Below, one piece after another: positions 12,990-14,627 of a stretch of 64,000 nt of DNA. The DNA is taken from positions 529,096 to 593,095 of the forward strand of contig JAWQFM010000035.1 in the NCBI GenBank assembly GCA_033442325.1, in the 5' to 3' direction. The notes beneath the pieces are model-generated. The model was given only the letters and a program-made list of their open reading frames with translations. It ran no database searches and was not told the DNA's origin. Positions within the stretch are counted from its first letter, which is position 1. Each line of letters starts with the position of its first letter. The stretch is from Salpingoeca rosetta. Its lineage: Eukaryota > Protista > Choanoflagellata. Position numbers and translations under genes: made by a program.

Positions 12990-14627
12990 TCAGGCAAGAC
13001 TCCTCAGCAAGCTGGTTGTCCATTCATACACTTGACTGTTACCCGGGTAGCTCTTCTTGGCCTGCCTGGCGAGAAGAGAAACGTTTTCGGAACGAAGATA
13101 TCCCCGCAAGTCAGGGTGAAGGGCGAGATGTGCGAGCACACCACACCCATTCTTTTGCACACCGCCGTCGTTGGTGTGCGTCTTCATCGCCGCGACCACA
13201 GCATCAATCCCACCCTTTGACGCAATCGCCACCTTGTTGTCATCATTGTTGCATGCTATGTTGCACAACGCAGCAAACCCATTCTGTTGCACACCGGCGT
13301 TGTTGGTATGACTCTTCATCGCCGCGATCACAGCATCAATCCCGCCCTTCGACGCTGTCGCCACCTTGTTGTCGTCATCGTTCACTGCCAGGTTGTGCAG
13401 CGCACCACACCCCTGGTGTTGTACCTTGCTGTTGTCGATGTGGTTCTTCATGGCTGCAATCACAGCATCAATCCCGCCCTTCAACGCAATCGCACGTTTG
13501 TTGTCACGCCTATAGCATGCCAGGTTTTGCAGCGCACCACACCCCTTGTGTTGTACCCCCTCGTTGTTGGTGTGTATCTTCATGGCTGAAACCACAGCAT
13601 CAATCCCGCCCTTCAATGCAATCGCCACTCTGTAGTTGTTGTATGCCAGTTTCCACAGCGCACCACACCCTTGCACTTGCACACCACTGTTGCTGCTGTG
13701 CATCTTCATCGCCGCAATCACAACATCAATCCCGCCCTTTGACGCAATCGATACCACGTTGTCGTCGTTCTCTGCCAGGTTCCATAACGCAGCACACCCT
13801 TTCTCTTGCACATCGCCGTTGCTGCTATGCATCTTCATCGCCTTGATGATTGCGTCGATGGCGCCGGATGCAGCCGCCTCCACACGCTTTGAGCCATTGT
13901 CCCTTGCTTGGTCTTCCAGTGCCTTGCAGGCAAAACGTTGCACGTCAGCAGAGGCGGGAAACGCCTGCATCAACTGCACAATCTCAGCTGCGTGCATGCT
14001 GATGCCGTTATTCTGCAGCTTCCGCACGGCGTCCTCAGCACCACCGCCACTGACTGCCCGCACGCCATGCACTTGCGAGGAGGAAGAGGAAGAAGGGGAA
14101 GAAATGTCAAGCGAAGTTGAAGAAGCTGGGCCACCTGCTTCTTGCTGCTGTGGTTGCTGTGGTTGCTGTGGTTGCTGCTTCACCGATGCACCGACGCCGG
14201 TCACGTCCTTGAGCTTGGCGATGATGGCGTCCACGAGCTCGTCTGGTGGCTGAGAACGCTCGGCGCCCTGTGGCCGCCATGGGTGGTCGGCGATGGTGGA
14301 TGGGAACCAGAAGCGCGTCTTGGCGTGCTTGAAGCGGTCACACATCTTCACCAGGAAGAACGGCTTCTCCTCATCCATGATGAACTCGAGCTCCTTGCAC
14401 GAGCTGAACTTGCTGCCCAACTTCTCGCCGTACGTGTGCGTGCCCATGATCACCACCAGCTCGCACTCGTCGATGGCCTCGATCACGGCGTCGGCGATGC
14501 TGTCGCCAGCAGCAACGGAGCACAGGAACGTGGGCACGCCCCGCTCGTCCAACGCCTTCTTCAGGGCTTCGCTCTCCTCCATGGCCTCGCTGAAGCGCAG
14601 CGAGATGAACACCCGGTGTGGTGGCAT
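12990..14627 (-). CDS. Intronless TIR domain plus armadillo-repeat protein (545 aa)
   Basis: N-terminus HRVFISLRF..ALKKALDERGVPTFL..GDSIADAVIEAIDECELVVIMGTHTY..SCKELEF is a TIR_2-type domain with the alphaC Glu. After a Q/S linker come ~7 ARM repeats of ~42-44 aa (GGIDAVIAAMKxHxxNxxVQxxGCGALxNLA). Confidence 0.9.
   Translation of the reverse strand: MPPHRVFISLRFSEAMEESEALKKALDERGVPTFLCSVAAGDSIADAVIEAIDECELVVIMGTHTYGEKLGSKFSSCKELEFIMDEEKPFFLVKMCDRFKHAKTRFWFPSTIADHPWRPQGAERSQPPDELVDAIIAKLKDVTGVGASVKQQPQQPQQPQQQEAGGPASSTSLDISSPSSSSSSQVHGVRAVSGGGAEDAVRKLQNNGISMHAAEIVQLMQAFPASADVQRFACKALEDQARDNGSKRVEAAASGAIDAIIKAMKMHSSNGDVQEKGCAALWNLAENDDNVVSIASKGGIDVVIAAMKMHSSNSGVQVQGCGALWKLAYNNYRVAIALKGGIDAVVSAMKIHTNNEGVQHKGCGALQNLACYRRDNKRAIALKGGIDAVIAAMKNHIDNSKVQHQGCGALHNLAVNDDDNKVATASKGGIDAVIAAMKSHTNNAGVQQNGFAALCNIACNNDDNKVAIASKGGIDAVVAAMKTHTNDGGVQKNGCGVLAHLALHPDLRGYLRSENVSLLARQAKKSYPGNSQVYEWTTSLLRSLA

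Follow-up and report, generated by a model that had tools for sequence, protein, structure and literature searches.

A choanoflagellate TIR-armadillo protein from a large family with a conserved helix-C glutamate and interchangeable partner domains

We found here that a gene of the choanoflagellate Salpingoeca rosetta encodes an N-terminal TIR-fold domain joined through a disordered linker to an armadillo (ARM) solenoid, and that it belongs to a large family whose members exchange their partner domains. The TIR family to which it belongs is mostly choanoflagellate and sits between the Pfam families TIR_2 and DUF4062/NIR. From the sequence it is reasonable to infer that the TIR head, with its putative catalytic glutamate, is an NADase and that the ARM part has a sensor role. 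The gene lies on the minus strand at positions 12990-14627 of the window (the whole 64,000-nucleotide stretch of DNA that was analysed) as a complete single-exon CDS of 545 codons plus a stop codon (12990-12992), taken from the list of open reading frames. Its 545-residue product, which begins with ATG, is identical to a protein in public collections. The enclosing open frame extends over 639 codons but has no upstream in-frame ATG, and the twelve-residue N-terminus MPPHRVFISLRF is common to the gene and its three closest paralogues, so that the chosen start and the single-exon structure can both be relied on. The protein is cytosolic, being made up of the TIR-fold head, a tether of some 45-50 disordered residues and an ordinary armadillo solenoid. 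The window, which occupies positions 529096-593095 of contig 35, also holds (CA)n microsatellites and poly-Q or low-complexity open reading frames at a G+C content of 52-58%. The idea of an 'immune island' around the gene was discarded, since Pfam searches of the neighbours returned only DUF5074 in a propeller gene and left the others blank. A scan for bacterial promoters and terminators found nothing above chance; that scan is made for bacteria and the host is a eukaryote.

The N-terminal domain (residues 1-146; positions 14190-14627, minus strand) was assigned its TIR fold, with strands A-E and helices A-E, from Pfam, AlphaFold2 (AF2), Foldseek, VIA-align and profile searches of PDB sequences. 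The AF2 model, built from an alignment of 31 paralogues from the genome, has a pLDDT of 82.7 and a pTM of 0.82, and its beta-alpha order is that of TIR domains: strands at residues 6-9 (VFIS), 33-35, 57-62 and 90-94, a short strand E, and helices A-E. In the predicted model five parallel strands thus alternate with five helices, as in a flavodoxin-like fold. Foldseek placed TIR domains at the head of the solved structures throughout, with E-values of 1e-6 to 4e-5 for RPV1, RUN1, RPS4 and L6 and 1e-4 for SARM1. Structural comparison with VIA-align covered 132-139 residues of solved TIR domains, giving Z 15.3 for RPV1 (139 residues, 2.8 A) and an equal Z of 15.3 for the human SARM1 TIR (residues 1-142 of the model on residues 559-700, 2.7 A), with the TIR-APAZ protein of SPARTA at 13.7. 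At the level of sequence, a profile of the paralogues matched Roq1 (8.5e-4) and the SARM1 TIR (7e-3) among PDB sequences. The original prediction, made from the letters of the DNA, had recognised a TIR domain here with motifs at betaA and alphaC, and the models bear this out: strand A occupies residues 6-9 and the SSCKELEF motif lies inside helix C, at residues 76-85.

The narrower label of 'TIR_2-type', also given in that prediction, fits the wider family better than it fits this protein. For this domain, the protein itself clears the Pfam cut-off of DUF4062 (PF13271) only, which it matches at 28.1 bits against a cut-off of 24.7 (its residues 5-82 covering positions 1-79 of the 82-position profile; 31.9 bits in a six-frame search of the genome), and falls below the 28-bit cut-off of TIR_2 (PF13676; clan STIR), where the full-length sequence scores 17.9 bits and the isolated domain 20.8. 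The Pfam TIR model gave 12.8 bits on the same domain. The relatives are TIR_2-like: at E<=0.1, TIR_2 is reached by 25 and DUF4062 by 24 of the 31 paralogues from the genome, at least six exceed the TIR_2 cut-off in the genome scan (28.4-31.2 bits), and among 131 representatives of the wider family there are, at E<=1e-3, matches to TIR_2 in 90, to DUF4062 in 18 and to TIR in 12. In UniProt the paralogue PTSG_10764 is named 'DUF4062 domain-containing' and PTSG_02868 'TIR domain-containing'. Over its 82 positions the DUF4062 model reaches as far as a G-x-R-Y-G turn after strand C; even in a canonical S. rosetta copy, which scores 60 bits, the match stops ahead of the G-I-T-E-L-E-F motif. In our protein the match spans two thirds of the domain from its start, with the G-T-H-T-Y-G turn inside it, and is therefore silent on the active-site helix. 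Judged from these sequence matches, membership of DUF4062 says little about the active site. PADLOC gave no match on the protein and NCBIfam only a sub-threshold match to Thoeris ThcB4.

The likeness to DUF4062/NIR proteins (KpSwz/Swarozyc, Avs2, Evangelion and TEP1) extends to the VFIS sequence of strand A, the G-x-x-Y-G turn after strand C, a helix-C glutamate three residues past a conserved Thr/Ser, and the position of the domain at the N-terminus, ahead of a repeat domain. The protein differs from them in its marginal score (28 bits against 60 for the canonical S. rosetta copy), in lacking the STAND/NACHT NTPase of most eukaryotic NIR proteins, and in its motif, which is S-T-x-E-E-L in the family and S-Y-T-E-x-E-Y in NIR proteins. 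Set side by side, S-S-C-K-E-L-E-F of the protein, S-T-x-E-E-L-R-[FY] of the family and G-I-T-E-L-E-F of the canonical copy can be aligned in two registers. In addition, W117 is nearly invariant in the family, and the description of Evangelion includes an acidic-SYT/E-Y motif, which holds the catalytic Glu, and a Q/W/E motif.

SSCKELEF (residues 75-82) holds one glutamate at position 79 and another at 81. Translation, family conservation and HMMER alignment together identify Glu79 (codon at 14391-14393, minus strand; within CKELE, residues 77-81) as the catalytic-equivalent residue of helix C. Of the 31 paralogues in the genome, 27 have Glu at position 79 (three have Gln and one Ile), Leu80 is invariant among them and position 81 variable, and in the profile-aligned wider family position 79 is Glu in 152 of 156 representatives and Gln in the other four. 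Position 81 had come into consideration through the likeness of K-E-L-E-F to T-E-L-E-F in the canonical DUF4062 copy, but was ruled out: it is Glu in 15 of the 156 relatives and mostly Arg (71), Gln (20) or Lys (19), and HMMER sets E79, not E81, on E86 of Roq1, which we take to be the catalytic residue of that protein. This alignment, made with a profile of eight TIR_2-like paralogues (E 0.0046), is weak, with a low posterior in the helix-C stretch and a four-residue gap; it lays T-F-E-E-L-R-Y-I of the family on C-L-E-E-L-V-K-I of Roq1, with E79 on residue 86. The mutated site of RUN1, where wild-type CLDEL becomes CLDAL in the E100A chain, is the same WCLxEL position. E79 is singled out alike by its conservation, by the E-L-x-x-I pattern of the helix and by the alignment, and the retention of a catalytic-type glutamate that had been predicted is thereby upheld for the first Glu of SCKELEF, which in this weak alignment does not fall off the catalytic position.

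The surroundings of Glu79 are conserved in part. S9, E14, G62, T63, Y66, G67, T76, L80, K88, M95, C96 and W117 are also nearly invariant and sit at the C-termini of strands and the beginnings of helices, such that they may form a pocket-like set located as in TIR active sites. Position 78 is acidic in most relatives and Lys in our protein, and the Trp that precedes the glutamate in plant and SARM1 TIRs is absent from it. A profile of the C-terminal half of the domain produced only chance matches among PDB sequences (CspZ/CRASP-2 and 14-3-3).

An NADase reading of the head is favoured because both of its neighbouring families, DUF4062/NIR and TIR, are proven NADases. That DUF4062 is a TIR-like NADase emerged in 2026, with E97 of KpSwz and E1008 of human TEP1 as the residues concerned (10.64898/2026.05.01.722283). 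E108 of PsAvs2 marks another such NADase, in work that renamed the domain NIR and found it in 96% of choanoflagellates, mostly in NLR-like proteins (10.64898/2026.09.04.749371), and E87 of Evangelion a further one (10.64898/2026.06.25.731849). A different TIR domain of S. rosetta itself (F2UB80, residues 1034-1255) makes cADPR (Hurieva et al. 2026). However, only one of four human DUF4062 proteins assayed in vitro was active, namely TEP1 (10.64898/2026.05.01.722283), and with the other three inactive a conserved glutamate is no guarantee of activity.

Behind the head, residues 147-196 (positions 14040-14189, minus strand) form a disordered linker rich in Gln, Ser and Pro, which contains a 9-nt microrepeat at 14146-14177 and varies in length through indels among the four close paralogues. 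Its Q/S character, noted at the outset, is borne out by residues 147-190, which are Q/S/P-rich and have a pLDDT below 50. The remainder of the protein (residues 197-545; 12993-14039, minus strand) is a solenoid of about eight armadillo repeats, on the evidence of Pfam (ARM_LRRK2, PF23744, 83.5 bits against a cut-off of 26.2; Arm, PF00514, 49.6 against 20.6), AF2, PDB and Foldseek searches. The full-length AF2 model (pLDDT 86.5, pTM 0.66) shows three-helix repeats over residues 197-544, with a pLDDT mostly above 95 in the ARM part. There are six regular 44-residue units, with the pattern G-G-I-D-A-V-I-A-A-M-K-x-H...V-Q-x-x-G-C-G-A-L-x-N-L-A, and one cap repeat at each end; the ARM repeats that had been predicted are thus present, but their number is nearer eight than seven. 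Beneath the internal repeats, the DNA carries a tandem array of 132-nt (44-codon) units at 13135-13842 (TRF: 5.4 copies, 77% matches), and the repeat count among the four close paralogues runs from 5 to 8.

The sequence matches indicate an ARM domain of the ordinary beta-catenin/Vac8/LRRK2 type. A phmmer search of PDB sequences with residues 196-545 returned designed consensus ARM proteins (4e-32), Vac8 (6e-16), beta-catenin (8e-14) and LRRK2 (2e-11), with plakoglobin and ARMC4 as further matches, and Foldseek returned designed ARM, APC and beta-catenin. No SARM1 chain was among the best 60 of the 66 PDB hits. Four of the six internal repeats retain the H3 Asn, the residue that in importin-alpha-type ARMs binds extended peptides. 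The full-length AF2 model gave no confident docking of the TIR and ARM domains on each other (pTM 0.66, with a 44-residue disordered tether), and the earlier suggestion that the ARM part acts, as in SARM1, as an autoinhibitory sensor of a small ligand finds no support.

SARM1 and our protein both combine, in one chain, an ARM-type solenoid and a TIR fold with a helix-C glutamate. Beyond this they diverge: the order is TIR-linker-ARM rather than ARM-SAM-SAM-TIR, Pfam detects no SAM domain in the protein, TIR identity is 16-18%, and the ARM repeats are of the beta-catenin/Vac8/LRRK2 type. Furthermore, S. rosetta has a separate 460-codon frame on contig 14 that carries SAM_2 (45 bits) together with the best TIR_2 match of the genome (76 bits), in the order of SARM1; this agrees with the choanoflagellate SARM1 homologues already reported (PMC6040629). 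The reversed order, the missing SAM domains, the unrelated ARM type and the separate SAM_2-TIR_2 frame support an origin independent of SARM1, in line with both the domain order and the separate assembly put forward in the original prediction. The plant TIRs (RUN1, RPV1, Roq1, RPS4 and L6) are the best structural and sequence matches, sharing F-x-S-x-R in strand A and E-L in helix C, but our protein lacks an NB-ARC or LRR, and its family has a loop before helix C that is four residues longer and is missing the W of WCLxEL.

The breadth of the family becomes apparent in the genome and beyond it. A search of the 55.4-Mb, 68-contig assembly, in which the domain loci counted are a lower bound, found the domain encoded in at least 37 places. 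Loci of this genome have translations identical to PTSG_10764, PTSG_09915 and three further S. rosetta entries, which marks the organism as S. rosetta. The open frames around 31 domain loci contain ARM repeats in about 11 cases. Other partners occur singly, among them PDZ, an MLLE with four RRMs (a copy of PABP), and a receptor L domain in a frame of 2,260 residues; SH2 is found in PTSG_05359 and PTSG_03080, COR in PTSG_12838, and WD40 and MORN modules are also fused to the same head. A maximum-likelihood tree built from the 31 domains groups 17 copies that lack ARM in one well-supported clade and leaves the ARM-bearing copies outside it, which is compatible with a single origin of the TIR-ARM combination in a tree that is unrooted and weak at its deep forks. 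A word-index search with residues 1-150 yielded only eight close relatives, and a full profile was needed to reveal the family: among 1.84 billion cluster representatives, 1,208 matched it at E<=1e-3, 174 of them at E<=1e-30. Of the best 156, 72 carry the domain at the N-terminus, 26 at the C-terminus and 16 internally, while in 42 it stands alone. Twenty sampled members came from S. rosetta, Microstomoeca roanoka, Craspedida sp. UC1 and, more distantly, Picozoa, with the rest from aquatic metagenomes. A TIR-like domain is again paired with ARM in 11 of 155, from M. roanoka, Picozoa and metagenome contigs. One further metagenome protein with TIR_2 and Arm, P0047, has a truncated TIR, and an hhalign comparison of the family with it was uninformative.

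The TIR-Arm combination in choanoflagellates has been reported before: cytosolic TIR proteins of these organisms were found to associate with Ank, Arm and SH2 (Richter et al. 2018, eLife, PMC6040629), and the present protein resembles them in being choanoflagellate and in joining a TIR domain that lacks a membrane anchor to Arm. The present searches met the combination again in M. roanoka, Craspedida sp. UC1 and S. rosetta. An atlas of TIR domains from 2026 includes several uncharacterised clades restricted to eukaryotes (PMC13142454). Both sources list the combination (PMC6040629; PMC13142454), without a definition of the family and without a catalytic residue, copy number or function for it.

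How such a protein works can be approached from these features together. In our preferred reading, which we hold to be about evenly balanced between right and wrong, the protein would be an NAD+-cleaving TIR head that is switched on by ARM-driven clustering and that arose within its own family. The head would cleave NAD+ to ADPR and nicotinamide, or to a signal of the cyclic ADPR type, and, as in other TIR enzymes, activity would require the gathering of several heads. The variable binding part would be the ARM solenoid, a role favoured by the modular partners of the family, the faster evolution of ARM and the varying number of its repeats, and its ligand would more probably be a peptide or protein than a nucleotide. 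A multivalent or clustered partner bound by ARM would then concentrate the heads and turn the enzyme on. With no NTPase or SAM oligomeriser in the protein, clustering would come from the ligand, from contacts between ARM domains or from the low-complexity linker. The TIR-ARM combination itself would have arisen inside the TIR family rather than from SARM1.

The same features could be read differently. Animal TIR adaptors act through TIR-TIR assembly, and the head might likewise serve as a scaffold, assembling with the SH2-, PDZ-, LRR- and Roco-linked TIR proteins while ARM recruits a client and no catalysis takes place. The occurrence of the same head on SH2 and PDZ signalling modules, the lack by Pfam of any oligomeriser or NTPase and the inactivity in vitro of three of the four human DUF4062 proteins would all suit such an adaptor. 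We nevertheless regard it as possible but rather doubtful, as a glutamate kept in 97% of representatives over deep divergence, along with the near-invariant pocket residues, exceeds the conservation usual for an interaction surface, and recent work finds catalysis in TIRs long considered adaptors.

A second alternative keeps the enzyme but changes its substrate. Synthesis of 2',3'-cNMPs has been reported for some plant TIRs, and it is conceivable that the head acts in this manner on RNA or DNA, or as an N-glycosidase on nucleosides or nucleotides, with ARM directing it to its target. DUF4062 is distantly similar to nucleoside 2-deoxyribosyltransferases and CMP hydrolase (10.64898/2026.05.01.722283, 10.64898/2026.09.04.749371), and sister copies bear RNA-binding PABP modules. 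However, the best structural and sequence matches of the head are all NAD+-cleaving TIRs, and we consider a different substrate improbable.

The pattern of selection was examined against the three closest paralogues, where dN/dS is 0.33-0.44 in the N-terminal domain and 0.44-0.62 in the repeats, values which place the gene under purifying selection. Among the four close paralogues dN is 0.19-0.31 in ARM against 0.02-0.07 in TIR; dS is likewise lower in TIR than in ARM, which may reflect gene conversion. The gene is the most diverged of these four recent copies, its TIR dN/dS being higher than that among the other three (0.11-0.25), and two of its changes, R77C and E78K, lie beside Glu79. This might be taken as the signature of a recent duplicate that is decaying or without function. 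We think this very improbable, given that the 545-codon frame is intact, dN/dS is below one in both domains and the ARM solenoid is confidently folded in the AF2 model.

Returning to the reading of an NAD+-cleaving head controlled by clustering, a broader proposal can be made for choanoflagellates as a whole, which we advance tentatively and think unlikely as it stands: that they carry a repertoire of receptors free of NTPases, in which a conserved TIR enzyme head and swappable binding modules make up sensors in one chain. If true, the modules would be ARM, possibly the ancestral partner, and then SH2, PDZ, copies of PABP, WD40, MORN and LRR ectodomains, and the sensors, once clustered by their ligands, would make an NAD-derived signal or deplete NAD+. 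This would amount to a third wiring of TIR immunity, beside the STAND-TIR proteins of plants and bacteria and the TLR-adaptor chains of animals. The gene described here is a clean representative of the family, intronless, at 545 residues short enough for expression, with E79 as its predicted catalytic residue and with close paralogues that differ mostly in the ARM surface. Should it prove inactive, the conserved glutamate would serve another purpose; should it prove active, enzymatic TIR signalling would be extended to a eukaryote-only clade, and the protein would provide a simple model of a sensor plus an enzyme that works without an NTPase switch.

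The highest-scoring TIR_2 match in the S. rosetta genome (76 bits) lies at G000:C14:846640-847395 (+), where it shares a single 460-codon open frame with a SAM_2 match (45 bits), and this locus is likely to be the SARM1-like gene of the organism. The genome also carries a canonical copy of the TIR-like NADase family DUF4062/NIR (locus L033, G000:C5:1200373-1200642, 60 bits), in which a long insertion separates the G-A-R-Y-G turn from the G-I-T-E-L-E-F motif. In this respect it resembles the eukaryotic NIR domains, which have been described with just such an insertion.

TIR-like heads are also joined to partners other than armadillo repeats. 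At L006 (G000:C17:622265-622702 and downstream), a head that is paralogous to that of the TIR-ARM gene and 67% identical to it is joined to a poly(A)-binding protein copy, recognisable by its MLLE domain and four RRMs. At L005 (G000:C17:82926-83350) the partners are PDZ domains. Here the match covering the initial ~39 residues of the head is set apart, a short way upstream of the rest, so that the domain is interrupted by an intron or a frame break. In the domain alignment (A1), four further paralogues of the genome (L019, L021, L022 and L029) carry Gln or Ile at position 79 instead of the conserved Glu, and are thus probably non-catalytic heads.

Close to the TIR-ARM gene, a 243-aa ORF (14900-15631, +) is arranged head-to-head with it, has an N-terminus of the same pattern and gives no match in Pfam. 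A 447-aa ORF (17057-18400, -) scores 43.9 bits against Pfam DUF5074 and resembles a secreted beta-propeller. Pfam found no immune-type domain in either of these or in a 992-aa ORF (18546-21524). Long (CA)n/(TG)n microsatellites at 15950-16150 and 16800-17060 give rise to spurious ORFs (THTHTH or CVCVCV in translation) that overlap one another in large numbers on both strands. At 60001-62000 the G+C content falls sharply (0.37 versus 0.50-0.59 in the remaining window), and numerous overlapping ORFs of 250-430 codons occupy several frames on both strands.

Finally, among the four recent TIR-ARM copies (L002, L003, L004 and the gene at 12993-14627 of the window), the ARM part shows the higher synonymous divergence, at 0.28-0.68 against 0.12-0.23 for the TIR part, which suggests either gene conversion of the head or that the two halves of the gene differ in age.
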